64,000 bases of DNA, from assembly GCF_041956535.1 (NCBI RefSeq), contig NW_027192197.1, forward strand, positions 1,178,341 through 1,242,340, written 5' to 3'. Below are positions 39,100 to 64,000 of this stretch, piece after piece (the first letter of the stretch is position 1; each line of letters opens with the position of its first letter). Position numbers and translations under genes: made by a program. This DNA is from Calcarisporiella thermophila CBS 279.70 (Eukaryota > Fungi > Calcarisporiellomycota). A model generated the notes under the pieces. It saw only the letters and a list, made by a program, of their open reading frames with translations, was not told where the DNA came from and made no database searches.

Positions 39100-40410
39100 T
39101 TACCCCCCGCGAACAAAATAGCTGGTGAAGTAAAGAACACTCCCGAAAACCCGGAACACTAAATTTCGTATTGAGGCCCACCACCAATTCTCGATGAGTA
39201 GCAATTTCATGGTTTGTAACGATTCACCGACCGCTTTGAATCCATACCCCACCATCTCTTTCTCATACTCCGCAACAGCAAGGATCAAATCTTTCTCCTC
39301 TTTATGAGCTGCGATGATGGCATGCGACAACAGTTGGGAATCTTTCAAAGCCATGTTCGCTCCTATACCCTTGAATGGCGTCATACTATGAATGGCATCA
39401 CCCAAGAGGGTCACGTTGCTCGTCTTCCATGTAGAAACGGGTAGGGATGTGCGGATTGGGAGCGGCGACAATGTTGTAATGTCGGATTCCTTGACTAGAC
39501 GAACTAAATCTGGATTCCAATCCCTGATTTTCTCAAGGACTTCGGCGCGCAATTGCTCGTGTCCGAGTCCCTCGATGTCGTGACCGTGTTTATGAAACGA
39601 ATAATTCTCTCGACGAGAGGTGAAGGCCCAGAAGATATAATCTTTTGTGTTGTCGAATAAAAATCCAAGATCCTTATACTCGCGCTCGTTTCCGCCGATT
39701 TCACCGTCGGCCTGAGTAGGAGCCTGGTTGAATTGTTGCGAGGCCACAAAGAGCATTTCTCCCCGCTTGGATGTCACAATACTAACCCGCTGGAGCATTG
39801 CTTTGGGCAGCCATGCTCTTGTTTCGTCTGTCAGGGGAAGTTTTGCGGCAACCCCTAGTACTCCCGTATCGATACGTTGTGCATGCGGCAGTAGTTGTTG
39901 GCGCACGCGTGAATTGCCACCATCGGCTCCAACTAAAAGATTCCCCGAGGCCCAAGTGCCATCTTCAAAGTAGGCCACCACCGTTCCGTTTTCCTTTTGC
40001 TCGAAGCGCTCGAATCTCTTACCAAATTTCACATGATCTTCTAGTCCTGAGAGGAGAACTTGACGTAGTGTAATTCGGCTCACCGATTTGTGTCCATCGA
40101 TCTTGGCTTCATACCCGGGTTCAGCTTGCAATCTGTGATCCAACATTGGATTAAACTCCTCATCGTAAATGCAAATCCCGCCTCCCGTTTTGCCCGAAGT
40201 CGCAATTAGAGAATTCCATAGTTCGGGTGAAAGCGCCTCATGAAGTGCTGCAGAGCCTTCGGGACCAATGTGAATGCGATAACCTTGCAAGCGATCAGTC
40301 CGGGTACGATCCCGCTCATAGACCGTAAAAGACACTCCCGCCTTTTTGAGAGCCTGGGCAAGGCAGAGGCCTCCCAGACCACCACCGATAATGATTACAT
40401 GAAAAGTCAT
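39100..40410 (-). CDS. FAD-dependent monooxygenase (class A aromatic hydroxylase type), intronless
   Basis: GGGLGG dinucleotide-binding motif, YERD...LQGYRIHI, LVGADGGNS, TLLGDAIHSMTPFKGIGANMALKD. Confidence 0.9.
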   Translation of the reverse strand: MTFHVIIIGGGLGGLCLAQALKKAGVSFTVYERDRTRTDRLQGYRIHIGPEGSAALHEALSPELWNSLIATSGKTGGGICIYDEEFNPMLDHRLQAEPGYEAKIDGHKSVSRITLRQVLLSGLEDHVKFGKRFERFEQKENGTVVAYFEDGTWASGNLLVGADGGNSRVRQQLLPHAQRIDTGVLGVAAKLPLTDETRAWLPKAMLQRVSIVTSKRGEMLFVASQQFNQAPTQADGEIGGNEREYKDLGFLFDNTKDYIFWAFTSRRENYSFHKHGHDIEGLGHEQLRAEVLEKIRDWNPDLVRLVKESDITTLSPLPIRTSLPVSTWKTSNVTLLGDAIHSMTPFKGIGANMALKDSQLLSHAIIAAHKEEKDLILAVAEYEKEMVGYGFKAVGESLQTMKLLLIENWWWASIRNLVFRVFGSVLYFTSYFVRGG

Positions 40411-40749
40411 AGTTGCTTGTTGAAATTGTATATTGAAGGAGGATTGATTTCAAAGAGCAGCTTTTCGTGTTTTTGAGAGCTATATATTGTTCTGACATCT
40501 GGGGTTGGCATATTTCTCTTGGCTCAAAATTTTACCGAGTCTTTAATGAACACCAATCGTTTCCCTGCCAAGATTGATTGCGTCACATGTTTAGGTTAGG
40601 TTTTTCAATTCTACGAATCTCTCTATGAATGTACCCATTGACCCATTATATTGCAATCCAATCCAATGGCTACTATCTATTTTCAGACGGAAATCAAAAA
40701 GGAACAGCTGAGAAATAATGTATTGAAAATAAAAAATTGTTCCGAATTT

Positions 40750-40833
40750 TGGACGCTATGGGGATTGAACCCATGGCCTTTCGCATTTTTGCTATATTGC
40801 AAAGCGAACGTGATACCACTACACCAAACGCCC
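40750..40833 (-). tRNA. tRNA-Ala(TGC) with a 12-nt canonical intron
   Basis: Minus strand reads GGGCGTT TGGTGTAGTGGTATCAC G TTCGC TT-TGC-A [ATATAGCAAAAA] T GCGAA AGGCC ATGGG TTCAATC CCCAT AGCGTCC A. The acceptor stem has the G3:U70 alanine identity pair, and a T-run follows downstream. Confidence 0.93.
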
Positions 40834-41153: not shown

Positions 41154-41558
41154 ATGGTAATTTATAGTGTAACGGTCTTCATCCTTTTTCTCTCTGCTGT
41201 TACAGTATCTGCTGTTCCACAGCAAGATTTTTCACAACACCAATTAACGGAGCATGCAACTGAGGGCTTATATGGTGGTGTGAATGGTTACGAAAATGAG
41301 CTGAGCAAACGTGACGTAAGAATAGGGGGCAATAACATGGTGGAAGGGGATCAGCAGATAGGAATGGTGAAGTATCCTTTTGATGGAGTGGTTGTGAAAA
41401 GCTGCTAACTCAAATACCATTAGAATAAGATTGACAAAGCAGCGAGTAAAGAAAGTGGCTCCGGTAGCTTGAACCAGAATATTCGTAACGAAGAATCAAA
41501 GAGTGCTCCGGCCCAAACTTCCCCGAGTGCGACTCCTTTCATCAATTCACTGTCATGA
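41154..41558 (+). CDS. Small secreted protein A (115 aa) carrying the shared N/Q/G-rich module plus a short S/T/P tail; exons 41154-41366, 41424-41558
   Basis: Signal peptide MVIYSVTVFILFLSAVTVSA; KR site; intron GT 41367, branch GCTAAC, TAG 41423; mature part DVRIGGNNMVEGDQQIGM|NKIDKAASKESGSGSLNQNIRNEESK...SLS*. Confidence 0.8.
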
Positions 41559-45817: not shown

Positions 45818-47086
45818 ATGGGATCACCGACAGATTCCGCTACAAGCAGCTTTGCCCTGACGAACGAGGAGGCTGGCATCATCATGGCAATGGCCAAACC
45901 ACTTAACGTGGTTGCAATCAGCTCAGCCTCGCTCGTCGTTGCTTTTCTACTGATGCTTCGATTCACGAATCCTCAGATAACTAATCGAGTGTCGTTGCGG
46001 TTGGCTTTCTCGATCTCATTGGTGGACATCATATATCACTCGGGCCAACTTCTCGGGCTCACTAACAACAACGGCACTTCGTTCTTCTGTGGCTTCGGTG
46101 TGTGGATCTTTCTCTTTACCTCGCTCTTAGCAACCTTCCTCACCACCATGATCGCCGTCAACCTGCAGCTTGTCATTGTCCACCACAAGTATAGAACACG
46201 CCAGCTCGAAAAATGGTACTACATCATCTCCGTGCTTGCCGCTCTAGCCATCTCTTTACCCCCCTACTTTACCGGCTATCTTGGATACAACGCCGCAGAG
46301 AAGACGTGCTGGTTTGTCGGGCACGATACTCACGCCTTCCTTGTGCAGATCTTCATCTACTTGTTCTGGATCTATTTATGCGTCATCATCTGCATCGTCG
46401 CGGTCTCACTCGTGATTTACCAGCTCCTAAAAGCCCGCAATACGCTGCAAGAAATCCAAGGCATGGCTGGGAATGCATCCGGCGTCAGTCATAAAAGCGT
46501 CACCGTCACCAACCCAGTCTCCGAGAAGGTGTCACGCTGTGTGCGGCGCATCATTCTCTATCCAGTCGTGCCTATATTTGTGCAAACCCTAGTGTTGGCC
46601 TCCGAGGCCCAGATTTACGCCGAAAAACACATCCTCTTCTGGTTATTTGTGGTGTCATATATCGGAACAAGTTCCCAGGGATTGATCAACGCTATTATAT
46701 TCTTCGGCTTTGACCCCGTGATTCTCTCGGTGTTTGACTCTGTCAAGCTTGGGTGGTCCTCTTCTCGGCGTAAAAAGAAGGCCTTTTTCAGTTCGAGCGA
46801 CACTGGCGACTATAGGTCACGTAATTCTGGAAAATTCACGCAAATTCTAGATACAAGTGTGGAAGGAGACGAAAATTCAGATGGTGACGGCCTGCACGCT
46901 ACTTATATTCAGATGAATGAGAGCAGCCAATTTACCCAACCTGGTTTCCCACACGCAGGGAATGTCTACCATCAGCAGTCGCCGTCGGGGAATCGGCGAC
47001 CGGCTTCAGAAGCATGGCAGTCTGGTGTTCCTAGGAGCTCGGAGGATGGCTCCCTCAACTCGGAAAAACTTGTACGGCTACTTTAG
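45818..47086 (+). CDS. 7-TM G-protein-coupled receptor, cAMP-receptor-like/Git3-related
   Basis: Seven hydrophobic segments; RVSLRL, IAVNLQL, LEKWYY, GYN...CW, RIILYPVVP, SQGLINAIIF...DP; S-rich cytosolic tail. Confidence 0.85.
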   Translation: MGSPTDSATSSFALTNEEAGIIMAMAKPLNVVAISSASLVVAFLLMLRFTNPQITNRVSLRLAFSISLVDIIYHSGQLLGLTNNNGTSFFCGFGVWIFLFTSLLATFLTTMIAVNLQLVIVHHKYRTRQLEKWYYIISVLAALAISLPPYFTGYLGYNAAEKTCWFVGHDTHAFLVQIFIYLFWIYLCVIICIVAVSLVIYQLLKARNTLQEIQGMAGNASGVSHKSVTVTNPVSEKVSRCVRRIILYPVVPIFVQTLVLASEAQIYAEKHILFWLFVVSYIGTSSQGLINAIIFFGFDPVILSVFDSVKLGWSSSRRKKKAFFSSSDTGDYRSRNSGKFTQILDTSVEGDENSDGDGLHATYIQMNESSQFTQPGFPHAGNVYHQQSPSGNRRPASEAWQSGVPRSSEDGSLNSEKLVRLL

Positions 47087-49892
47087 GTAACTACAATCTA
47101 TGTCATAGGTTTTGTTTGGAGAGTTGATTAAGCCTTCGTTCCCCTCCTGTCCTAAATAATAGATTGTCTCATGGTGTTCCCTATATACCATATATCTTCC
47201 TGTGAAGTACTGGTTAAAAAAATTGTCAGGGGGCCTATGAAAATGTTTTATTTATCCTTGTCAATAATAGTGTGTAAATATTGAATACATAGATTCACAT
47301 CTACTCCTCATTTAGCTTATATCATTTCGATACTTGGGGTTAACCATTTTGATGTGATTCGAAAACTCTTTTATTAAGTCTTTCTGTTTATCACTTTAGC
47401 TTATCTTATTGTTATTATTTTTCCCTCAATAATTATGATGTTTATCTGAGGGGGAGAATTCCCCTTGAAATCCTGCGATAATTTTTTGACTACCTACTAG
47501 AATCAAATTCTCAAACAAATCAAGTATTCCGCTGGATTTAATTGGACAAAGCCCTCCTCTAAACCCTCAAATCCAATTCAGTATTCTATAAACACATCAA
47601 TCTAACAAAAACATCTGTTGAAATTATACGAGAACAAGATCTCCTGCTGGAGTTGCACTAAACTCATGAGAAGTGTAGCAATTAAAAAATATGGCACTTA
47701 TTTTAAAACATTTTCCGTCACAAAGAACATGAAGCTATACATTTATTCAGGTTCATTTATTTTTATTCTCTTCACCTATTACTTTTGTCGCAATACCTGA
47801 TGCACTTGTGGTGATGTACTCAGCAATACTTGCAATAATCTGGGGTAAAATACTCGCAAGCATTATATAATTAAAGGTAAGTATAATTCGGATTACAATT
47901 AAAATAAGATCGCTCGTTATTTCGAACGATCTCATCACGTTTTGTAGTCTATTCTTTGGAGAAACGAAGGCAGATTGTGGAGTCAATGTTTCCGTGAATA
48001 AGCAAGATCCAGCTTACTACAATGTTATTTGGTTAAATTTTGAACTTCAATTACCCATCACAACATTGCCAGCCAGAAAGCATGCACCTCTCCTGCTGTA
48101 AGTGCAATTGGTTTCTCACCCCTAAAAAATCGATTCGGATTCCCAGTGGTTTCTCTGTCAAGGCTGATATATTCTCCGTCGAATCAGTAAAATGCTTGAT
48201 AAAGTTCCCAAGTTTGAATGCACGTATAGCTAGACCAAGCGTGAGAGCTTCATCAGTCCTTGCACACCAATTCATGAGATTTAGTATTCATTTTGAATAT
48301 CTATATGCATCAAAATGCATACTCAGCAATCGGAATGGTTAATTGCCAAGCTATGCTTATATTTAATCACTTTTCTAGAGGACGCCTTGCTTCGAAAGCA
48401 GGGCTGAAAGCCTAAGCTCTTTGATCACATCACCAGAGTTGAACCATGATCATAAAAGGAGGAGGATAATTGTAAGAAAATTTAATTTTAATGACATATA
48501 ACATGCACTTCTTCATATGCATTCTAATTTAATTCAGTTTAAAAGCATTCATCCATAGTATGGATGTCTTGATATACTCTACTCACAGATGGGCTACTGG
48601 TCTTGCACGCACTACATCCAATTCTCTAAGGCTCCTGGATATTGTTTGATGTTCAATATACGGGTTAAAGTTGACTAATAATATTAATTTACCTTTTTTA
48701 TCCACATTTCTGTTTGGTTGGATACTTGATAGATACATTTTGATGCATTTGAAAGATGCTAAAAAAATCATGCGATGATATCGCAGCCATAAAGGAGATA
48801 TCAATTATTAAAGAAGAGGGGAATTACCTACGGAATTAAGGTACTGTATATCAAAAGGATGTATCCGATTTCTGAATATCAAGTGGGGGTCCTAGTTAGC
48901 CTCTACCAAGTTCACTGGTTTCAAAGGGGTCTCACTTTTGATTTTTAAAAAGAGGTTGATTAAAGAACAGTCTTTTTGCTTCATGTATCAAAAGTTTATT
49001 AAAATCGTAACATTATATTGCTATTAAATGATTTAGAACTTGGGAAGTTGATTTTCCTTTTACTGTCGCAAAAAGTTTTTTTTTCAGCTGTAGAACAAAC
49101 AACCTATTTGGAAAGTATGGGTTTGACAAAGCTGATGTATCAAATACGCCAAATACTTTTGCAAATCTACAGGATATTAAGAAAGTCAGCTTATAATAGT
49201 GCCATATTTTTCTTGGCAATACTTTGCAAAATCATAAATGGTAATGTTAGTGGTAATGGTAATTATAGAGGGCAAACGCAAATACCAGTTTAATTGCGAA
49301 TTGGTAAAGTATTAGCTAGATTTTTTTTTTCTTGGTGTAGAATATCAGGAGATGTATTAGGAGTAGAATTCAAGGAGAAATCTCAATTTTGAATATCCCT
49401 ACAATCTAGGCAGTGACGCAATACTAATAAACTTCTTTCATTTTTAATACAAAATGCTGCAGTTTAAAGGCAATAAATACAATTTGATCTAATAACATCT
49501 TAAACATTATTTTTTTTAAAGATATTTTTAGTAGTAAAACCTTTTAAATTCAGTTGAGACATGGTTTAGATTTCCGATAGTTTTTTCCAGGTATTTGAAA
49601 TTTAAGACGATCAGTCTTGCCTAGAGTTTTGCTGAGACCCCCCTAAAATTTTTTAAGGTTTTCCATCGTGAGAAACTGTTTCTTATGAGCTGACATATGA
49701 ATTTCCAAGAAATTTGATAATTTTCTCATTCGTCACCTCAATAACATAAGCATTTTACAAAGTTTTTGAGAGTATTTGCCAGTTTTTAAGATTCATGCTA
49801 AGAGTTTAGCTTTCGTAAATTATATAAACCTCCAATTTCTCGTCAATTAACGATTAAGTCCAATTCAATTTAACTCTACACTTTATCTAATC

Positions 49893-50873
49893 ATGAAGAT
49901 CTGCACACTAATTTCTTTGGCTACCCTTTATTTCGTGACTTTCTTCGATGCCGCGAACTTTGTTCAAGCTAACCGTATCCTTGTAGAGCGACAAATTAAA
50001 ATCAATGGAAATAACAGTGTTGAAGGAAATCAACAAATTGGAGAGGTAACTTTTTTTGGAAAAAATTCTCCAACTCATGAGTTGTTTAACTGTGTTTGAA
50101 CGAATGATTAGAACAATATTACAAACTCAACTAATAGTGGAGACAATAGTGGTTCTTTGAATCAGAATATCAATGCGGGAAATGTTGATGAAGATGCGGA
50201 AGGGGGCGGAGATGAGGTATCAAACCAAGCATCAAATCAGACTCAAGTTAGGTCGACTGGAGACACTTATAGGAATTTTGCAGCACTAATGGAAGCATGC
50301 AAACAAGACAACACTATTAAGTACTCCATTGACGCACAGGAAAGAGGAGGGAATATGATTGTTCTGGGTATCCACGGTGGAAATATTGAATTGGGAACGT
50401 CCGAAATAGTTAGAGCCATTGCAAATTATGCAGATAAGCCGCAGCTACCATACTATTTGTTTGAGTCCCATGTCTCACCGAGTAACAACCAAAGGAGATA
50501 TAATTTACATATAACGTCAACACGTTTTGACGAACCTAATGCGATCGAAATGACCACTAGGAAAACTACTGTCATCTCTATCCACGGCGCAGCTAACGAA
50601 ACTAATATCGTATATATGGGAGGATTAGATGAAGATTTGAGCAGGAAAGTCGGAGGTCAGTTAAGAAACGCAAATCTCAGTTTCAAGTTTGAGGTCAACT
50701 TCAACCCACCACGTGGGTTGACTGGGAAAGAGCCGAACAATATCGTGAACAAGGGTCGGACTAGAAAAGGCACACAGCTGGAAATAACCCGGGGGATGCG
50801 AAGAAGGCTTACTCGGAATCCTACGGATCTTTCGAAATTTGCATTGGCAATTAGAAAGGCTTTAGACCAATAG
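49893..50873 (+). CDS. Secreted protein B (304 aa): shared N/Q/G-rich module fused to a poly-gamma-glutamate hydrolase domain (PghP/DUF867 family); exons 49893-50045, 50112-50873
   Basis: Signal peptide; ER site; QIKINGNNSVEGNQQIGE|NNITNSTNSGDNSGSLNQNI; acidic linker; then DTYRNFAAL, IHGGNIELGTSE, LHITSTRFDEP, ISIHG, YMGGLD, GKEPNNIVN, GTQLEIT. TATATAAA at 49821. Confidence 0.88.
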
Positions 50874-51118
50874 TAGCTTTGTATCCTCGAATTACTGTTC
50901 ATTATGAAATTATAAAGAGTAAATAGGATAATTAATCGAACCATAATTTGTTGTTTGCTAATTAAATTGTAGGAATAATATAAAAAATAAAATTTTAAAC
51001 ATGAATAGTATCCCTTAGTCTAACTCAAAGTTACTGGATTATCATAAAATTTTTAAATATAGTATTGTATTTACCTATAAATATGGTAAAACCATTAAAA
51101 TTTTCTCAGTGAAAACAA

Positions 51119-51313
51119 ATAGATAACATATGGAAGTAAAAGGATTGAGAGCTTTAGCGATTCCCGAGATAGTTTTTAAATTTTAACGTATTTTTTCGTA
51201 CTTTTATTACAGTATATTGGGAGAAGTTTACAAATTATAGTAATATTGTAGGAAAATTATAGGAAAACGCGAACGTTCTCAATCCCTTCTATATGCTCCT
51301 ACACGTTATCTAT
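51119..51313. repeat. Degenerate ~195-bp fold-back (MITE-like) element
   Basis: Left end atagataac...ggattgaga...ttagcgattcc mirrors the reverse complement of the right end (atagataac...ggattgaga...ttcgcgttttcc) with mismatches and indels. Confidence 0.4.
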
Positions 51314-52516
51314 ATGATATCGCACGGTAGACTTTTTGTAGGGCTACATCTAATAATATCTATCTTCTTGAATTACTTTATTTTAGTTTCAATTAAATAG
51401 AGCTTATTTCTAAAATATTTTTTGCATATTTGCATATGCCAATATTTTGTGTGATGTACTCATTGTGTTAGGCTAAATCAAGTTCTTTAAACATTTGGAA
51501 TATGGCTGAATATTTTAATTACTCCGGTATGAGAAATTAGTATAGCCTATAATCGTTTACCGCAAGGGCCAAGAAGTATAAAGAAGCCTGGATGAAACTG
51601 GCACTACTTACTTTAGCCTGAAAGTTTATCCTAAGAGAATAAAGTAATAGTCAATGACTATTCGGTATGATTTATTACTTTGCCCTTAAAAAACAAACCA
51701 TGGGAATTGAATCCAAAAATACAACTTTCAATAGTGTCATTCCTAATCTCATGTCATTACATTATTTGATAATCTAGTTTGAAATTTGTGAATCTCCAAA
51801 TTTTTGGTAGTAAAAGGGAGTTTGATATCCTAAATCCAGAGATCTTCTAGATTGATATTATAAACTTTTTGCCAATTAAAAAAGGCTAATGTATCATGTG
51901 AATCAACGCCAGAGCAACCTAATGAGATCGCCAAGATTTTCCCAAATAACTAAACAAACACAACAATATCTAGATCTTTGTATACCTGGTAAAGGCTCAT
52001 ACTCTAAATATACAACATGTATAGCTTGTTATACATATATATCTCTAAAATTCCTCAACTTGTAAATCTAGTGTCTAAGAGGTAAATAAGTGTTTAGTAG
52101 TTGTTTTTTTTAGGATATTCAACAGTTTGAAATGGATGAAAGCATGTAATAAGGCTCTTCGACAATTATTAATCCCAACTTCATATTCCAAGAAAAATAC
52201 TATTCTGTAATTTCAAACTGCCTTATTTTGTTTTGAGGTGGTAAATACAAAGTCGTGTCTGGAAACGATCCACGATAAGCCCATAGCTATTTACTTCGGT
52301 TTGAGGCAAAAGTGAAACTTTAATAGGCTATTCTCTTGGTGAAAACTAACAAATTAAAGAGAATTGCCATAATAGACTAATTAAAATTTTGCGCGTATCC
52401 GTAGTATATCAAGAGTGTATAAAAAGGACACATTTTACAATCATTTTTTATTCATTACCAGATCAACTTTTCAATTCAATTTCAAGTATACAACAACGTC
52501 TCTATTTTTGCAGAAA

Positions 52517-53084
52517 ATGAAGTCCGTTATTCTTTCAGTTGCAGTTCTCTTCGCCACCATTGCCAGTTCTCAGGCCGAACCGGTTCTTAAACACATAGGT
52601 GAACGAGGCATTAATGTCGGTGGGAGTAATAGTGTTGGCAGTAATCAACAAATGGCCGATGTAAGTCCATTATTATAAGATAAATCTTTTATCGGCAGAG
52701 CGACTAACCAGTTTGATATTGTAGAATACAAACCAGAATTCTAACAACAGCGGTACTGGTGCAGGTAGCTTGAACCAGAACATGGTCGGTTGTGCCAACT
52801 GTCCTCCGCAACAGACAATTACTATAACTAGATCTTGCTATCCACAACCTACTGTTACCGTCACTAAGAGCTTCGTGTCCACTTATACGCCACCCCCACA
52901 AGTAATCACGGTAACTAAAACCGTTGCTTCACCTTGCCCTACCCCACCGACCTATCCCACCAAACCTGCATGCCCGCGCTCTTATTGCCCACCCTGTCCA
53001 CGCCCTAACAACAATGTCGGAAATGGCATTTTGAATCTCGGAAATGGGGGTCGGGATGGTAGTCTCATTAGGATTTTTAGTTAA
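52517..53084 (+). CDS. Secreted protein C (167 aa): shared N/Q/G-rich module + Cys/Pro/Thr-rich stalk + N/G-rich C-terminus; exons 52517-52660, 52725-53084
   Basis: Signal peptide MKSVILSVAVLFATIASSQA; ER site; GINVGGSNSVGSNQQMAD|NTNQNSNNSGTGAGSLNQNM; intron GTAAGT 52661, branch ACTAAC, TAG 52724. TATAAAAA at 52418. Confidence 0.85.
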
Positions 53085-54566
53085 ATTCACGATAAAATGA
53101 TATGATGCTATTCGATTTATCGTTGCTCTTACATTTTTTTTTCATTTAGAACGATAGGATATATATATTTTTGACACAATTAATGAATGTGTTAGATTCT
53201 AATTTTAAGTAACTAAGTCCACTTTTTAGATATTTGTGAAATTAATAAATGAATAATTCCGGTCCATGCTTCAATATTATCGTACAGTTTTTGCTTAAGG
53301 CGACAGCGTAAGGGAAATGGACAAAGTCAGCAATCCACGCTTCATTTCCCCTCTTCTCATTTTTTTTTTGGTTGATAGGATTTTTTTTATGATTATTTCG
53401 GGACGGTCGAGGAAACATCTCCTTGGAAGATTAATATTTATAGTATCATCATATTCAAATTATCGTACGATTTTATTTTTTTATTTTAATCTCTATTTCT
53501 TTGTATCAGTTCACTTTATCCAATAAATCGGCCTCATAATCGTGAAGCGTTGACTGCCGGCTTTGTCTTGTCAATTTCCCTTGAGCCGTTGCTTAAGAAA
53601 AAAAAATTTTTGAAGATATAATTTCGAAAAACAGATAAGTTTAGTTTTCTATATATTGATCACCATTTGGAAACACAGCATTGTTTAACAAAAAACGGAG
53701 CCTAAGATTACTCTGATATTATATCACCAATTTACTAAAGAATAAAAGGCTGGTACCGATTATCCCGGCAAAAAATTGAAAGCATATTCTTTTAAGTACC
53801 ATTAATAATTAAAACTTCACATAGATATCGCAGCCCATGTCTGGCTTGCGTTGCTTTATTTACCGTAGTCAGCCTGAGCTGGTTTGGCAGTTGAATATCC
53901 AGAAGATATTTAAGCTTATTTATGAAATCAGATGATTGATCTCAGTTGACTAGCCTTTTGTAATAGATTGATTGAACGAATAAGATGTAGATTGGGTTTC
54001 CTTCTTTTGGTTCATTTTATGTTAGTGTGGCTTTTTTTTAGCACTCTAAATGCTGATTGATTGATACACAAACTTTAGAGCAGAGTAGTAAAGTATGACT
54101 CATTTTATCTGTATTGCCAGACTACAGCCATAATTATAAAAGCCCCTTTGCTCATATCAAGTCCGTAAAAAAGTACCACTATGTCATATTTTATTATCAA
54201 TTCGCCTACATCTTACGGAGGTTTCAGATTAGATTTCTATGAAAGTATCCGACTCCTTAAAATTCCCCGTAATACAAGTCACAGTCTTAGCCACCATTAA
54301 CGAAATCTATAAGATTTAACCTATTTCCCACACAATAATACATGAAAGGGGCGGCCAATAAAACATAAATCTAAAAATAACTGGCCATAGATCAATCTAA
54401 TGGAACACGTAAATTTCCGAGTTGTATAAATGCAGACCGATACCTGCATCAAGCTAGGTCTCCTTTTACTTTCCTTTCAACAAGAGAAAAGTAAGCTCTC
54501 CTGATTGTAAATAATAACCCTCTTCTCAAACTTTGGACACAAGCGTTAAGCTTTAGTACTTAGCAT

Positions 54567-55274
54567 ATGAAGAGAGTTTGGTGTTTCTTGCTGACACATG
54601 TACTAGTTATTATGTCTACAACAGGCGCCAACTTCCGTTCCCGCTCCATTGGCATGGTTGTCTTTCCTGGATTTGAAGTACTTGATGTCTTTGGACCTTT
54701 AGAATATTGGAATATACTCCCGCTCATTGCACCTACTGGTTTGAGTGTTTCGATTATCTCTCACAAGGTTGGACCAGTGAGTTCGATCCCACCAATTAGA
54801 CCTGATGCAATTGGACAGAGTATCTTAGCAACTCACTCTTTTAGTAACCCTCCCAATCTCGATATTCTCATAGTACCTGGAGGTATTGGCACACGGACAA
54901 TGATCAATGACACCGTTCTTCTCAATTTCATCAGGGATACCTATCCCACATTGGAGTATTTGGTGACCGTATGCACAGGTTCGGCGTTAGTTGCGAAAAC
55001 TGGCCTATTAGATGGTAAAAATGCGACATCCAACAAAAAATCGTTCGATTGGGTTATGCAACAAGGACCTAACGTTAAATGGATCCGCCGTGCTCGCTGG
55101 GTTGAAGACGGAAACATCCTCACCAGCTCAGGTGTCCAAGCGGGTATGGACATGACCAATTATCTCATTGGGAAGCTATACAGCGAAGAGATAGCGAAGC
55201 AGGTCAGCGATCGCATGGAATACGCACCTCACACTGATCCCACGTGGGATCCCTTTGCTGACCAAACGAAATAG
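54567..55274 (+). CDS. DJ-1/PfpI (ThiJ) family protein, isonitrile-hydratase-like subgroup, intronless
   Basis: FPGFEVLDVFGPLE, DILIVPGGIGTR, nucleophile elbow TVCTGS, GLLDGKNATSNK, RWVEDGNILTSSGVQAGMDM, MEY...DPFA. The start is either Met1 (hydrophobic leader) or Met16. Confidence 0.9.
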   Translation: MKRVWCFLLTHVLVIMSTTGANFRSRSIGMVVFPGFEVLDVFGPLEYWNILPLIAPTGLSVSIISHKVGPVSSIPPIRPDAIGQSILATHSFSNPPNLDILIVPGGIGTRTMINDTVLLNFIRDTYPTLEYLVTVCTGSALVAKTGLLDGKNATSNKKSFDWVMQQGPNVKWIRRARWVEDGNILTSSGVQAGMDMTNYLIGKLYSEEIAKQVSDRMEYAPHTDPTWDPFADQTK

Positions 55275-55711
55275 TTTGCTTAACTTGTTACACCGGATTT
55301 TTCTTTGAATGATTAATTTATATTTATATCATACATTAATGTATCCATTCACCATGATCGTTAGTAAAATACTAAAGTATCAATAGTCGGATCCTCTATG
55401 ACAGTCGCTAATTTAGAAGGATATATGAATTAATATTCATTTTACTTTGCTTCATATTATACCTTAGAGTATCCCAGCTTGTTTAAAACACGCCTTTTCA
55501 CGTAGAATTTATTTTATATATTACTCCTAGTAATTCAAGCATGAAGAGAGTAGTACTGCTTTCACGCCACTCTTCCGCATTTATCAAACCAGCATTACCA
55601 CTTCACAAGGTGATACTTAACATTTTCTGTTACATCTGTAGATTCAGTTTATGGGGGTATTATCATATAGAACGAGTAGTGTTGTGTGATTAAACAGTCT
55701 AGCTCCTCTTT

Positions 55712-55764
55712 ATTGTTTGATTCTAGGTAGAGAAAAGAATTTTCTCTACCTAGAATCAAACAAT
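55712..55764. repeat. Perfect 25-bp inverted repeat with a 3-nt loop
   Basis: attgtttgattctaggtagagaaaa-gaa-ttttctctacctagaatcaaacaat. Confidence 0.95.
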
Positions 55765-56898
55765 GTCTAATTATCAGGAACATTAGTTATGAAAATAAGA
55801 TCGAATACAAAATTTGCTTATAATCAATGTTCATATCTCCAAACATCAGTGTAGTTGACATATCAGAGGTACACAACAGCTTTGGCTTACAATGTTGTTT
55901 TCTATTATATTCGAAAACTGTATAATTGCACTTGAGAAGACAAGTTGAGCTAGAATTTAATAAAATTGAGTATGCCTTGTATTCCGGTTCAAATAGACTT
56001 TCCACTCAATATGATTTCGTAATTATATAATCTTACGTATTCTGCTGGTAAACATATATTCAACATTAGCTGATACCTGGGAAGTTGTAGTGCAGAAACC
56101 ATGACTACTTTATCACTGTAAAACAATGGCACTTGATCACAATATAATAAACCACCATCATGGAAGATATAAAGAAAAGAAATACTTCAAACTCATTGCA
56201 TCAAAAAACATTGCTCGAGAATAACTAGATAGGCTTCGACAAACCAATCCAGTGCAATAATACGCCCATCGATTTCAAAATGTTATCAACGATATTCCAG
56301 ACAAGTCCCACGAAGAATTGATTCATTATTTCCTACGAGGAAATAAGTCAAATACTTGTTTCGACGTCAAAATTCGTCAACCATATACTTTGGAAGAGGC
56401 CACCAACTTCGTCAATATGTTCGATCAAGTATCATAATCCTTATAGGAGACAATTCAACAAGCCTGCTCCCTTGCGTTCCCACGTTAAATCAGATTCAGT
56501 CAACGTCACATCCCATGTAATCGGACTCAAATCAAACATCAAGACTCAAGAAACTGATCGATGAAGATTGTCAATACCTTATCAAAATTGGCGCTTGCTT
56601 TCGATGCCGCAATAAAGGTCATTTTGACATCATACATGCCCACTCAATAATCGATCTTCGCGAAATCTCGAACATTTCACCAGACATACACCCACATTAA
56701 AGGATAAATATTTCGCAGGATTATCTACAAAATTATTCCGAAATAGCGACTTCCACCTATTCCATCACTCAGGATTAACACTGAGAACACGGAAGAACCT
56801 CTGCTATGCTACAGCGGAATTCTTGAATGACACCCAGTTATGATCTTCGTCGACGGTGGATCAACTTGCAACTTTATCTCTCGCCAACTTTTCAAAAG

Positions 56899-57158
56899 TG
56901 TAACTGAAGCCAATGTATCTGTGTTAAGTAAAAAAAAAATCAAGGAATTATTAAGGATAAAACTTTGACTATTGCTATAAAAATTAACTAAGAAACACAC
57001 ATTTATAACATGAATTGTTAATAATGTGGTGGGTAATGACTTAAAAGTGTGGCTATAAAACCAAGAAGACTATCAAACAAGATAAAAGTTGAGGTTGTTT
57101 CGCAAAAAGATCGTCTTGGCGTCCTTCGCATATCCATAATAAAACGTATCCTCTTACA
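56899..57158. mobile_element. Solo LTR #1 (260 bp) nested in the Gypsy protease region
   Basis: Ends TGTAA...TTACA, flanked by 5-bp TSD AAAAG (56894-56898 and 57159-57163). Excision restores FISRQLFKSLYIRVMAIDPFQLTFATG. Confidence 0.85.
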
Positions 57159-57869
57159 AAAAGCCTTTATATAAGAGTGATGGCCATCGATCCATTTCAA
57201 CTCACTTTCGCCACTGGTAATTCATTAAAATGCAATCAATAAGTTCGAGGCATCGCTCTTCTAGTCAACGACCTCCGTGAAAAGCTAAATCTTATCGTGA
57301 TCGACCTTCCACGCCTTGACATTATCTTGGGAAATCCTTGGCTTGCAAGACTCCAACCCGGCAACAATTGGGTAATTTACGATATTAAATTCCAACACCA
57401 TAGTAAAACCACCCACTGGAAAAGCAAGAACAGCATAACCATCGCTACTTTGTCAGCGCTGCAAATGCAACGCAGCACCTGTGATCCAGACAATCAATTA
57501 TTTCTTTATAATTTCATCAACAAATGATTGTAACAACAAAAATATCAACCAGCACGACGACCAGAATATCAACCAGTTACTTGATGAACTCCAAGATGTT
57601 TTCCCCTCTAAAGTTATTGCCACCCTCCAGAGCCGTGGATCACAATATAGAATTTTTATCCAATCATGACCCTCCATTTAAACAAGTTTATCACCAGAGT
57701 TACGCTGAACTGAACGAACCTCGTAATTAACTGCAAGGGCTTCTTGATCATGGATTCATTTAACCAAGTAAATCACCATTTGGAGCAATCATTTTCTTTG
57801 TCGAAAAGAAGGATCGTAACATTCGAATGTGTTTTGATTACCATTCAATCAACAAGATCACTATAAAGT

Positions 57870-58148
57870 TGTTGGAGGACGACCAGGCGTGACCTAAGTC
57901 TGAAATAGTCTAGATATTCTTTGTGTTACAATGACTGATATCATATTTATACAAGCATGCACCATACATGTATAAGCATGCATCTCACCATCACTATTAC
58001 GCCTTATCTCTTTTATTTCCTATCCTTTTCTATCATATATATAGGATGTGATCTATCTCTCTTGAGTTCTTTGGTGTATTTGAGTTGTGTTATCCCTTCT
58101 GCCTGTCTTCTTTCCTTTTTATCAATATATTATTATTAAAATCCAACA
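57870..58148. mobile_element. Solo LTR #2 (279 bp) nested in the Gypsy RT region
   Basis: Ends TGTTGGA...TCCAACA, flanked by 5-bp TSD AAAGT (57865-57869 and 58149-58153). Excision restores INKITIKYRYPPPKIND. Confidence 0.9.
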
Positions 58149-60268
58149 AAAGTACAGGTATCCACCGCCCAAAATCAATGATATTCTGACCGGTTCGCAG
58201 AAGCAAAAATATTTTCCAAATTTTGACTTGCAATCTGACTATCAACAAATCAGAATCGCAGAACAGGACATACTCAAGAAAGCTTTTTGAACTCACTAGG
58301 GACGCTATGAATTCAAAGTACTTCCATTCTGTTTATCCAATGCTCCCGCCATTTTTACGACTCTTATGAACAATATCTTTCACCCTTTACTCGATGAATA
58401 GATTATTGTATACTTAGATGATATCTTAGTATACAGTATGAATATTCATAAACACCAAAAACATCTTCGCCTAGTTCTTCAAATTTTTCGTGATAATAAA
58501 TTATATGCCAATGCCGGTATATGCGACTTCCTTTGCATTGCAATTGAATTTCTTGGTCATGTCATTACCCAGAGGGAATCCAAGTTAATCCCAAGAAAAC
58601 CATTGCATTTCGACCTTAGCCACCTCCTCACAACATCAAGAATCGGTTTTAGAACTTGCCAATCACTAGAGGAAATTCGTTAACAACTTCATTTCAATTG
58701 CTTTTCCTCTTACTACTCTCCGCAAGAACACTCCTTTTTCCTGGACCCAGAAATGCTACAACGCTTTTGTTCAGATTGTTCTGTTTCATAGCTACACTTT
58801 CAAGCCAGCAGCCACCACATTATTCTTTATGTTATACACATGTATTTCCTAGTTAATTTTACTAGCAATAACCATACTTTTTCTCGGAAATTTCTTTGAT
58901 TTGCCAACTGAACATTTACAAATCGACTCTAGTTACAGAAATCATAACAAGATCTTCTTCATCACTTTAAACCAATAATAGTTAATAATAAAATATTTTG
59001 TGGTTATTTGGTCTTTAGAATCGCATGGATACTAACTCTCTCTTGATTCATCAAAACTTCAACTGGTCGTACCAATTAAACGATTTTTATCAATATTCTT
59101 AACAGATCCTTTATCCTTAAATGGATATGCGAATTTCCAAAATTTTAAGAATACGGGTATTCTAGAAGAAAAGACAGTACACCATTGATGAAGCATTTTG
59201 ACAATATTTTGACGTCATGTTGATGTGAACATATTCATAAAGGAATCAAATAATCAAAATTAATGATATTCAGAGGAACAAAAGTAACATGATAATATTA
59301 TCGGATTTTTTTATGTGTTAATATTCAGATTACATATCATGTTTGAGTTTAAGGAATTAATCCAGGCTTACATAATACCTGTAAGGCTTTACACCAAAAT
59401 GATTAGTTGTGAAAGGAAAAGTTGATACCTTTATAACATTGAGCTATATACTATATTCACCCAGTTGAATTTATGAACGATGTATTAGCTGTTTGTCGAT
59501 AATCCGAGAATATGACGATTTTTCTAACCAGTCAAATTCATTTTATACTTGTTCTCGAATACCCATTATGTGAACGGCGAGTCACAAGAATCTTCCAACT
59601 CTGTAATTTAGAACTTTTAGTATGGGTTAAATAATATGGCTTTTTACTGGTTCCAAGTTTAAATAAAGAGACACGAATCCAAGAAATTCATCAAATAGAG
59701 TCGAATAATATCCATTAATAGATAAATTTATCTGGTATAAGATTTTCCAATCAGCATATATAATTAAATCAAATTTGAATGTGCCTAAGAAGGTTTGCGG
59801 CTACTCGAATTTATCTTGGTGAACCATTCACACTTTTGTTCTGATAAAGAGACCAAAAGAGGGAATTTTATGGTTTAACCTTGAGTGTATGGATTTTCTG
59901 TATGGAACTAAAGGGTTTAATGAGGTTTAGATCATCATCAAGTGGTGTTTATAAATTTTAGTCTTCTAGAAGGCTAGGTTGTAAAACAGAAACTGCGAGA
60001 TGATGTAGTCAGGATATTTTTCTTATTTCTCATGATTATATGTCATTTTCACGTTTCCACAAGAGAAGCAACTATCCTGCATCAAAACCCTTCTTGACCA
60101 TTCTCAGTCATTCTTCTTTGTCCAACCTTTTTAACTGGAATATATATATAAGAGGGATTTGGGCCCTATTTTTTTTGCTGTATTAAAGCTGATAGCAATT
60201 AACATCAGTTTCCCTACGACCATTACACAATCTATATTTAATCTGATTATCCTTTCAACCGTTTCAAG

Positions 60269-61483
60269 ATGAAATTATCTGGCTATGCAGTTTGGTTTAC
60301 CTGCATAATACTTATTGTATCCTCAATAACTCAAGCAACCCCTCTTAAGAGAGAGATAAGAGGAGTAGGACCCAATGGATTGGTAGATAAGGAAGCGGCA
60401 AATAGTCCAGAAGCGATTAGGAGAAATGAAGAATTGAATGCCATATTTAGGAAAAAGCATCCAGAGTTTTTCCAGAAAGCGACCCCCCATGAGCAAAAGA
60501 AAATGGAAAGTTGGATCACTAAGATAGAGGATATCGCAGTTAGATATGGTCTTCCAGCAGTAGGGAGTTTCTTAGGAGAGCTTATTGATCCTGCAGGAGG
60601 TGGTGTAGCAGGAGGATTATTGGGAGATACCTTAGCGAGATACGTGGCTGTGAAATTTGGATTGGAAGAACACTTTGACACATCCCTACCGGTTGTCGGT
60701 CGCATCGGAAAATTAGCAAAAGCATTGGAGGAAGGGGCTGGTGTTGTTGGCGAATTGCCAAAGGGTTCGGCTACCCCAGGAAAAGGAGCGACAGCACCTG
60801 AGAATAACGAAGTCCCAGTAAATCCAGAAGAAAATGAAGTAATTCCCCCGGGTGAAAAGAACGGAAACGAAGCAACTGGTAATACTGAAGTAGAAGGAGA
60901 GGCTTGCTTAAGGAAGAGGGGCTCTGGTTCTCTTAATAGGCGGCAGATGAACTGTAATCCAAATCAAGCAGGACCGAGCGGAAATCGACCCAATAAAGCA
61001 CGACCGGGCCAATCGGTTGAAGCCAAGAGTGCCCTTAAGACCTACTTTCAAACCGGGTACAAGAACCTAATATTTCGAGCTTCACAAAGTGCCCACGAAA
61101 TGATAAACCACATGCGCGATTTTGGCCTAACTCCAAATGAACCAACAGATCTTCCGGCCAATATCGAGTTGAATAATAGGAGCTATACTACGGCCGTGCG
61201 TAGCTATCTTGAGAATCTCAAATCGAATCCTGGAAATGTAGCTTATTTTGAAGGCAGATATCAAACCGGGACGAAACTGTTGAAAGGAGGCAAAACTGGA
61301 CCAAGTCAAGTCGTGAGTGCACGGTTCATAGTCGAGGATGGCGGAAAAAAAGGTATAAAGCTGTTTGCAATCGGAAAAGATGGAAATAGAGCAAATGAGC
61401 TATTGTATGCCGGAAATATATCGAGAACTAAACTTGGAATTCTTGAGGAAAAAGGCGAAGTTTGGTTTGGAAAGAAACCGTAG
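60269..61483 (+). CDS. Secreted toxin-like precursor (404 aa): signal peptide, glycine-zipper region, acidic linker, Cys-dibasic-Cys loop, putative colicin-D-like RNase C-terminus
   Basis: Intronless ORF with signal peptide and KR site; GSFLG...GGGVAGGLLG; LPVVGRIGKLAK; CLRKRGSGSLNRRQMNC; basic C-terminal domain with HMRDFGL. TATA-like run at 60141. The ORF is secure; the function is inferred. Confidence 0.7.
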   Translation: MKLSGYAVWFTCIILIVSSITQATPLKREIRGVGPNGLVDKEAANSPEAIRRNEELNAIFRKKHPEFFQKATPHEQKKMESWITKIEDIAVRYGLPAVGSFLGELIDPAGGGVAGGLLGDTLARYVAVKFGLEEHFDTSLPVVGRIGKLAKALEEGAGVVGELPKGSATPGKGATAPENNEVPVNPEENEVIPPGEKNGNEATGNTEVEGEACLRKRGSGSLNRRQMNCNPNQAGPSGNRPNKARPGQSVEAKSALKTYFQTGYKNLIFRASQSAHEMINHMRDFGLTPNEPTDLPANIELNNRSYTTAVRSYLENLKSNPGNVAYFEGRYQTGTKLLKGGKTGPSQVVSARFIVEDGGKKGIKLFAIGKDGNRANELLYAGNISRTKLGILEEKGEVWFGKKP

Positions 61484-62479
61484 ATAAAGTCATTTTTGTT
61501 GTGTAATTTAAATAAACATTCAATTAGGACAATAATTAATTCTTTATCTTATAAAATCAATACCTCCATATCCTTTTGTAAAATTTGAATTGGATGAGCA
61601 TGTGAAATTTTAAAAAGAAAAATAAAATAGAGGGCTCACACTAATACTTGAAATATACTTCAACTAATTTAAATAAGATTAACTAAAACACCGAGTAATT
61701 GAAATTGAAAGTAATGGTATATTATAGCTTTGCGAATGTCTCATATACAAGGTTTTCTGCAAATCTAAAATGCAGAGGATAGAATATACGATACCTAAGT
61801 TACATTTGTTAGTTTCAGAGCGAAATAGCGCATTGTGATTGGTTAATGATTTTTAGTAGCCAGTTAAAATGCAGAATTTTGCTTAAAAATAAGCAAAATA
61901 ATCCGAATAAGCCTCCAATTGTTACTCTCCATTTTCTTTCCTGCAATATCGATTCAAACTGCAAGAATCGCGAAAGAACACATAATTTCTCATCTTCATC
62001 AGCACTTGCCTTTGTATTTTACTGGGTGATATCTAAATTCTCTTGAAGCTGGTTCTCTAAGATTTCCAATGGGGATCGGGAGAGTATATCAAAGTTCCAG
62101 GCTAGATATCTGGAAGGACTTGTCAGCTATTGATAAGTGAGTTTGAGGAACATACAAGTAAAGAAAGGTAAATTGTTAACTTCAGGTACACGAGCGCTCT
62201 GATAGGTAAGTCTTCCCTGCTCAAGAAAGCGAGACTTATATTTGACTGCTTCTGAAGAATAATTCACAGAGATGAAATTTAACTAGTAGATTACTGTACG
62301 AGACCAATTTTTTTGAATAAAACTTTTTCGGACATTTATACCCAAAGGTTAAGCTCGTGAATTTAGTATATTTACGTAAATAGAAGAATGCATATTTAAA
62401 GAAAATATTTCAACACGAAAACCATGGAGATAAAGACAATAGTAGCTTATTTATTTTGATATTCCGTCGTCATACTAAC

Positions 62480-62904
62480 TCAACAACGACGTGCGCAGAC
62501 GGAGCGATCGGGGCCGAGATTGCAACATTTTGTGCCCGGCCAGCAGGGGTAAGGGCTGGGACCAGCGATGCCTGAACAGAGCCCTCCCTCTGGTATAAAT
62601 TTTTCTGGACACTTAGTTCCAGCATAGCATAGGCCAACATCAGGGAAAACGTTACAACAGACCCCCTTTGCACATTTTCCTATTGGTCCTGCAATACTCG
62701 AGCATTGCTCCCCCTCAGGTATAGCTAGAGAAATAGAAAAGCAAATAAAATTTTAACCGTTTTCACTAAAAACACCAGCCGTAGTTGATTCGTACTTTTT
62801 GTCTGTCTTTTTTCATGGTCGAGCACAGGGCGAGGACTCGCTGATACAATTTGCTGAAGGGTCAATACAACCACGACATTGGCAACTAATTTAAGAAGAT
62901 GCAT
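62480..62904 (-). CDS. Secreted cysteine-rich peptide precursor (117 aa) with two tandem knottin-like 6-Cys repeats; exons 62904-62796, 62724-62480 (not in the ORF track)
   Basis: MHLLKLVANVVVVLTLQQIVSASPRPVLDHEKR-QTKTIPEGEQCSSIAGPIGKCAKGVCCNVFPDVGLCYAGTKCPEKF-IPEGGLCSGIAGPSPYPCWPGTKCCNLGPDRSVCARRC*; 71-nt GT-AG intron. Confidence 0.88.
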
Positions 62905-64000
62905 TTTGCTTGATTCTTATTCTGTTCAGAAAAGCGAGTTCTTTGGAGTGCAGATCGTATCAAACCAAACAATGATTTTATCCTGAGCTATCAGACTTCC
63001 TTTTTATAACATTTTATAACGTTCAGGCGAGTTGATGACTCTGAACGAGTTGCTTCAACGAAATATGTAGATTAGTTTGGTTGCCGCAAACATCATCATA
63101 CGGGCTTCTCAGAGGGTTGCAAAATGATGGGCAAAATATTACTGATGGGGCGCCCGATGCCCAATCAGAAGCGCAGTTATTTTGGAACAGTGTGTGCTTC
63201 CACGCCTAAAGAGGTATTATTGACTCTTCCAGGCTTAGTACATGGTTACGTGGTATGCAAAACAAGGAAGATTTCGGAAGAGGATGGGAAAAAACACGAG
63301 TTTAGTGCTAAATCGGGTTGGGATTGCGCTGTCCTGCTAAGCAAATGCTTATTACCCAGCTTTTTAGGCAAATCAGCGGTGAGATGCATAAAATGGTAAA
63401 CTGTGGTGTCCCTACGCAGCGATCAGACAAAGAATGAATGCAACCCATGGCTAAAAGCGGCAATGAATACCGGATTATTTCTTAGCAACCAGCATTATGA
63501 AATGTACCACAAACTGGCCTCCACATTTATTTAAGCGTGTGCTTCACCAACAATGGAAGATTTCATACATCATTGCCATATATCTACAGTCGAATTTTGC
63601 TTCGATATTTCCATGCGGATCTTTATGGCTCATTTTTAGGAAATTCAATTGGTTTTGTGACTCAGCGTTGCTATGTTAGGGTAACTTCGAGTAAAGTTTA
63701 AGAAAGTAGACAGAAACTGTAAATAGCAGAAACAATAATTAGTCTAGCATAGAGAATCACTAGCGGAGTCTAGAGATTCAGCTTGTTGGTGGAATGTTAA
63801 TCTAAGTTGTGCAATGAATTGCAGCCAGTTAGAGATGCTCTTTACAAGTATTTCTGTAACTGGAGAGAGTATGTCATTGCTCAGTGGGAAAATCAAGGAA
63901 TTAGTAAGGAGTAAAAACTATGTTTGTTTTTAAAATCAACTAAGAAATACATATGGGAGTTTCCAGAATGAATCAGACAATAAATATATAAGGAAATTAT

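Follow-up and report, generated by a model that had tools for sequence, protein, structure and literature searches.

The gene VTP21DRAFT_10800 of Calcarisporiella thermophila probably represents a captured bacterial poly-gamma-glutamate (PGA) hydrolase that has been set on a host leader and is secreted to digest Bacillus slime as food. The gene is real and its enzyme is probably functional, with an activity that we predict from sequence. PGA is the slime of Bacillus species, and C. thermophila is an early-branching, thermophilic and saprotrophic fungus placed in Mucoromycota. We analysed a window of 64,000 nucleotides (the whole stretch of DNA), part of a 1.25-Mb contig in an assembly totalling 28 Mb. 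The features of the gene, and two related genes in the window, are:

49821..49828, + strand: TATA-like box read from the sequence, 65 nt 5' of the start codon; putative function
49893-50873, + strand: VTP21DRAFT_10800, NCBI gene model, 304 aa, Calcarisporiella thermophila
49893..50045, + strand: exon 1, 51 codons, with a signal-peptide-like N-terminus and the first half of the host module
49893..49970, + strand: signal peptide predicted from hydropathy, about residues 1-26
49989..50045, + strand: first half of the N/Q/G-rich host module; the QQIGE at its end abuts the splice donor
50046..50111, + strand: GT-AG intron, 66 nt, phase 0, AG at 50110-50111, from the sequence and its agreement with the NCBI model
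50112-50873, + strand: exon 2, 253 codons in one open frame
50112..50174, + strand: second half of the host module (21 codons), with the SGSLNQN motif, opening exon 2
50175..50258, + strand: acidic Gly/Asn/Gln-rich linker, 28 residues, in which the host-to-bacterial junction probably lies
50259..50873, + strand: PF05908 poly-gamma-glutamate hydrolase domain (PghP-type Zn peptidase) and stop codon
50373..50390, + strand: HGGNIE, Zn ligands His139 (codon 50373-50375) and Glu144 (codon 50388-50390), matching PghL His41/Glu46 and PghP His40/Glu45
50463..50507, + strand: 15-residue loop ahead of the second His motif
50508..50519, + strand: substrate-binding His184, Thr186 and Ser187 (PghL His77/Thr79/Ser80); LHITSTRFDEP His codon at 50508-50510
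50583..50585, + strand: SIHG His209, third Zn ligand (PghL His102)
50781..50801, + strand: catalytic Glu275 (PghL/PghP Glu165; QLE Glu codon 50781-50783) and Arg281 (PghL Arg171, essential for activity)
41154..41558, + strand: paralogous module gene with a short tail and no enzyme; intron 41367-41423
52517..53084, + strand: paralogous module gene with Cys/Pro/Thr-rich cargo, 1.6 kb downstream; intron 52661-52724

The exons of 51 and 253 codons that we read from the sequence give a protein identical in length and sequence to the 304-aa NCBI model. Exon 1 opens at the ATG at 49893 and closes at the splice-donor GT at 50046, and its N-terminus is hydrophobic (11-residue hydropathy of 1.5-1.9 across the first windows). 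Module half and linker together carry a net charge of -6, and the linker has no match in the bacterial relatives. The original prediction had set the enzyme at 50220-50873; the domain does lie there from about 50259 on, but the first stretch, 50220-50258, belongs to the linker, and the start of the gene is at 49893. Its description of an intron-free catalytic domain with HGGNIE, LHITSTRFDEP, SIHG and QLE, joined to a fungal signal-peptide leader and a shared module, was accurate: the four motifs stand in one uninterrupted frame, and half of the module shares exon 2 with the domain. Family, structure, homologue and genome searches were made with single exons or the domain alone, while full-length protein queries used the NCBI model VTP21DRAFT_10800.

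Membership of the PghP/DUF867 family, as proposed at the outset, is borne out by profiles and by structure. The domain matches PF05908 with an E-value of 6.2e-43 and 146.9 bits (cut-off 22; span 50268-50819) and PHROG 4175 with an E-value of 8.3e-35; an NCBIfam search gave no match. Its AlphaFold model (pLDDT 91.7) adopts the carboxypeptidase-like alpha/beta fold of PghP and PghL. The only solved structures matched by the domain are PghL/YndL, the phage PM1 enzyme and PghP, which are the top three Foldseek hits (5ONJ, 21DC and 3A9L; TM 0.81, E<=1.2e-15), with the next match at 3.4e-4 and other Zn peptidases far behind.

PghL binds Zn through His41, Glu46 and His102 and uses Glu165 as its catalytic residue; its substrate is bound by His77, Thr79, Ser80, Asn151 and Arg171, and mutating several of these abolishes activity (PMC6506827). 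The fungal enzyme keeps every residue whose need was shown by mutation in PghP/PghL: Glu275, His184, Thr186 and Arg281 are the equivalents of catalytic Glu165 and of essential His78, Thr80 and Arg171. Asn261 corresponds to PghL Asn151. The HGGxIE His and Glu, the SxHG His and the QLE Glu, said to be intact, are indeed so, as His139, Glu144, His209 and Glu275. At the Thr168 position the fungal enzyme has Arg, the commonest residue of that column (111/262). Among 262 relatives, 30 columns are conserved in 90% or more; the fungal enzyme retains 29 of these and matches 20 of 80 among the most variable columns. Over 53 conserved columns it scores 0.89, the bacterial median being 0.91. This pattern is that of a working enzyme and suggests that the protein is probably functional, although part of the constraint may predate the transfer and have been maintained in a bacterial donor outside the sampled set. 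With a pI of 9.7 the domain is basic; its two N-glycosylation sequons are too few for any reading.

The leader, made up of exon 1 and the opening 21 codons of exon 2, is shared with a host family of secreted-protein genes, and the fusion gene conforms to the layout of that family (signal peptide, QQ(I/M)(G/A)x, phase-0 intron, SGSLNQN). The module is shared, as had been claimed, and genome-wide: profile searches gave 16 matches to one half and 11 to the other, in at least 13 genes. Most of these genes have the intron, and in the eight genes for which a script recovered both module halves it sits at the same point and in phase 0; paralogue introns measure 57-86 nt. The other paralogues that we read carry Ser/Thr/Pro/Cys-rich repeats or short tails, and VTP21DRAFT_10800 alone has enzyme cargo. 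A paralogue at C26:269998-270198 (minus strand), with a 248-codon frame and PVTVT-type repeats, lacks the family intron, possibly as a retrocopy or through intron loss. Another gene, at C12:33857-34330 (minus strand), holds at least four tandem N/Q/G modules, each with its own intron and with KR sites between them, and resembles a Kex2-processed repeat precursor; processed surface peptides have repeats separated by KR sites. Searches for module relatives outside the C. thermophila genome, among proteins of similar length, found none, and an Atlas structure search for the module returned no usable match and no fold; both are weak blanks.

Because the second half of the module, the linker and the domain are all in exon 2, the junction between host and bacterial sequence is inside an exon. 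The exon fusion that had been proposed does not fit this arrangement, as the domain junction does not coincide with the intron. Bacterial sequence replaced a cargo region instead of being spliced on, and the host leader brought the intron along. At the DNA level the leader resembles its paralogues only in short patches (68-90%), so no parent gene can be named.

The window is free of N and both flanks of the gene are fungal genes; the C. thermophila genome contains no second copy of PF05908. From 47000 to 64000 GC drops to 30-42% and genes become sparser, secreted-protein genes among them, with a decayed retroelement near 56100-58800. Past the window the contig continues for another 7 kb, and its last 9.4 kb contain 2,900 N and no telomere repeats. 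Other intron-free genes in the window are a DJ-1/PfpI-family gene with a hydrophobic N-terminus (54567-55274, + strand; PF01965), an FAD-dependent monooxygenase (39100-40410, - strand; PF01494) and a 404-codon ORF with a signal-like start, KR/RR sites and no Pfam match (60269-61483, + strand). A tRNA-like sequence spotted by eye at about 40735-40815 (- strand) adjoins the first module gene.

Sequence comparison makes a firm case for bacterial origin by horizontal transfer. The best matches are secreted Thermoflavimicrobium and Lihuaxuella proteins with 47% identity, followed by Bacillus sp. FJAT-53711 and metagenomic kin; the top scores in this donor group are 153-154 bits, against at most 126 for rows outside it. 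All other named matches are prokaryotic, in a set where many matches are unnamed and rare eukaryotic kin could be missed. A 2015 survey of PghP listed only three eukaryotic entries (PMC4497714), and we found no orthologue of the fungal gene and no second assembly. The acquisition proposed originally is upheld by these prokaryotic relatives together with the intron, host leader and fungal flanks seen in the assembly. The named matches show no broad eukaryotic spread, and in the trees suggested as a check the placement of the fungal gene next to a donor clade varies. GC3 is 0.42 in the domain, 0.35-0.45 in neighbouring genes and 0.32-0.52 in bacterial relatives, and base composition does not date the transfer.

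The donor was likely a Thermoactinomycetaceae-like lineage of Bacillales. The loop before the second His motif has 15 residues in the fungus, 16 in the Thermoactinomycetaceae/Bacillus group and 11-12 in 182 of the 204 scored members, and the lengthened form of 15-16 residues occurs in the fungus and exactly this group. A FastTree phylogeny of 263 rows joins the fungus to the donor group with a support of 93, and a further tree with 98/95; leaving out the loop columns gives 87/97 and 96, and adding phages gives 65/96. The fungal branch is long (0.8-2.0), and in three quick mixture-model trees it falls elsewhere or has no resolved position. The type of source first suggested, a phage or Bacillus prophage, is the less likely one on these data. 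The closest relatives are chromosomal and have their own signal peptides, the three nearest bacterial loci contain no phage genes, and the best phage enzymes reach 38% identity to the fungal domain. Forcing the fungus together with five phage enzymes, which the best tree groups apart from it, lowers lnL by 29.75, a cost that falls short of formal rejection (p-AU 0.0985). A Thermoactinomycetaceae-like donor would also fit a shared warm habitat.

As for the substrate, the family members that have been assayed attack gamma-DL-PGA rich in L-glutamate but leave all-D capsule intact (PMC4497714, PMC6506827). The capsule stripping that had been envisaged is hence tenable for gamma-DL-PGA but not for all-D capsules, judging from these relatives. 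Since tested members spare the latter, the likely target narrows to loose slime of the DL type; B. subtilis and S. epidermidis make such slime. We found no PgsB in the C. thermophila genome, so PGA would be a substrate foreign to the fungus. In this genome without PgsB there is a single CapA/PgsA-family match (PF09587, 260 bits, in a 457-codon frame) at C21:565856-566713, about 64 kb from a gamma-glutamyltransferase (GGT) locus on the same contig. The genome has four GGT loci, two of them with signal-peptide-like N-termini:

C15:247185-248761: GGT gene with a signal-peptide-like N-terminus
C2:269985-271476: GGT gene with a signal-peptide-like N-terminus

The two others are on contigs C8 and C21.

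Taken together, we propose the following scenario. A pghP-like gene of bacterial origin would have entered the fungal genome and replaced the cargo-coding part of exon 2 in a host small-secreted-protein gene; its source was most likely a Bacillales lineage with chromosomal, secreted enzymes related to those of the Thermoactinomycetaceae, and the order of these events is our reconstruction. This replacement would have supplied a promoter, signal peptide, intron and N/Q/G module at once, and the product would enter the secretory pathway and act outside the cell. There, by analogy with PghP/PghL, His139, Glu144 and His209 would bind Zn and Glu275 would cut the gamma-glutamyl bonds of L-rich gamma-DL-PGA, presumably yielding short gamma-glutamyl oligomers that the signal-peptide-bearing GGTs could finish to glutamate. 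The saprotroph may in this way gain carbon and nitrogen from Bacillus slime, with biofilm loosening as a by-product. Scavenging of slime has been proposed for non-producers (PMC4497714).

Other readings differ in what the enzyme does. With the same origin and activity, its main role might be antagonism or access: the module would hold it at the surface of hyphae or spores, and there it would strip PGA from colonising bacteria or open biofilms for other secreted factors. We regard this as unlikely. In its favour, the module is intact, there is no dibasic site between it and the enzyme, paralogues bear wall-protein-like Ser/Thr/Pro/Cys repeats, and the C12 gene consists of modules split by KR sites. 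Against it, no homologue or fold was found for the module, which may be a mere passenger of the leader. Equally speculative, and if anything slightly more doubtful, is the idea that the lineage-specific module is a surface-display tag on a captured bacterial depolymerase, making it a cell-surface anti-biofilm enzyme, possibly heat-stable, against thermophilic Bacillales. It is less probable again that the enzyme, though real and secreted, has shifted in specificity or serves a different substrate, gamma-glutamyl or polyanionic. Identity to assayed members in structural alignments is only 28-32%, the long loop after Arg171 that gives PghL a backbone contact (Leu180) is missing, the sequence deviates at six conserved columns, and its branch is long. 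Yet the equivalents of the PGA-specificity set His77/Thr79/Ser80/Asn151/Arg171 are all kept, many bacterial members also have the short C-terminal form, and a basic domain with a pI of 9.7 suits a polyanion.

The gene could also have no current function, as a silent or recently captured passenger. Its location would allow this, a gene-poor and AT-rich region near a contig end, with 30-42% GC from 47 kb on and decayed retroelements, but the in-frame fusion, the intact splice sites, the 253 codons without a stop and the retention of all catalytic residues at 47% identity to the nearest bacterium leave this reading very improbable. The genome was assembled from 454 data with SOAPdenovo (PMC11393059 supplement), and short reads of this kind could in principle produce a chimera or incorporate bacterial contamination. 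Either is nonetheless very unlikely, to the point of carrying almost no weight, given the absence of N and the in-frame join to a host-specific, intron-bearing leader between fungal flanks. Domain and module half share one exon, the gene has an intron-bearing paralogue on either side and no bacterial neighbours on its 1.25-Mb fungal contig, and no bacterial sequence is closer than 47%. Secreted digestion of slime as food remains the reading we favour.

Among the closest known systems are PghP of Bacillus phage phiNIT1 (PDB 3A9L; MEROPS M86.001) and PghL/YndL of B. subtilis (PDB 5ONJ), which have the same fold (TM 0.81) and share with the fungal enzyme the Zn ligands, the catalytic Glu and the substrate-binding His, Thr, Ser, Asn and Arg. 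Compared with them, at 28-38% identity, the fungal gene adds an intron, signal peptide, host module and linker, its loop before the second His motif is longer, and the long loop after Arg171 is missing. Closer in sequence are the PF05908 proteins of Thermoflavimicrobium daqui, T. dichotomicum, Lihuaxuella thermophila and Bacillus sp. FJAT-53711 (41-47% identity), which share the lengthened loop, the short C-terminal helix region and predicted secretion, and have a non-prophage setting at the three loci read. In the fungus, their bacterial signal peptide is replaced by the host leader. A C-terminal domain of about 105 residues in the Thermoactinomycetaceae is absent from the fungus and also from Bacillus sp. 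FJAT-53711; this domain is uncharacterised, with only a sub-threshold Pfam match. We found no assay of these closest bacterial relatives in the literature.

Fungi commonly acquire secreted hydrolases from bacteria, and members of this family had been listed in fungi before, so the surprise is limited. Indeed, PghP-like proteins of Aureobasidium melanogenum (KEQ57754.1) and A. namibiae (KEQ75168.1) appeared in 2015 (PMC4497714 S1 Table): the same family in a fungal genome, though in Ascomycota and not Mucoromycota. They are missing from the named best matches of the C. thermophila enzyme, which suggests that the Aureobasidium and C. thermophila copies are probable separate gains. A literature search that included few subscription papers gave nothing on VTP21DRAFT_10800 or on the PF05908 family in Mucoromycota, and neither is mentioned in the accessible parts of supplements to fungal genome and HGT surveys. 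At the level of activity, a gamma-PGA endohydrolase is reported for another fungus, Myrothecium sp. TM-4222, according to the title of Tanaka et al. 1993 (cited in PMC4914496). We found no PF05908-family gene shown in the literature to underlie fungal gamma-PGA activity, and VTP21DRAFT_10800 is a testable candidate gene for a breakdown reported decades ago. Such an enzyme from a thermophile may be of use in removing PGA slime or in producing glutamate oligomers. A fungal PghP-like copy is thus not unprecedented. The novelty lies in the lineage, in the probably independent acquisition and in the fusion to a secreted module specific to this lineage. By replacing the cargo of a host secreted-protein gene, a bacterial gene without introns seems to have turned into a secretable fungal one in a single step, and the locus records this clearly at the molecular level.
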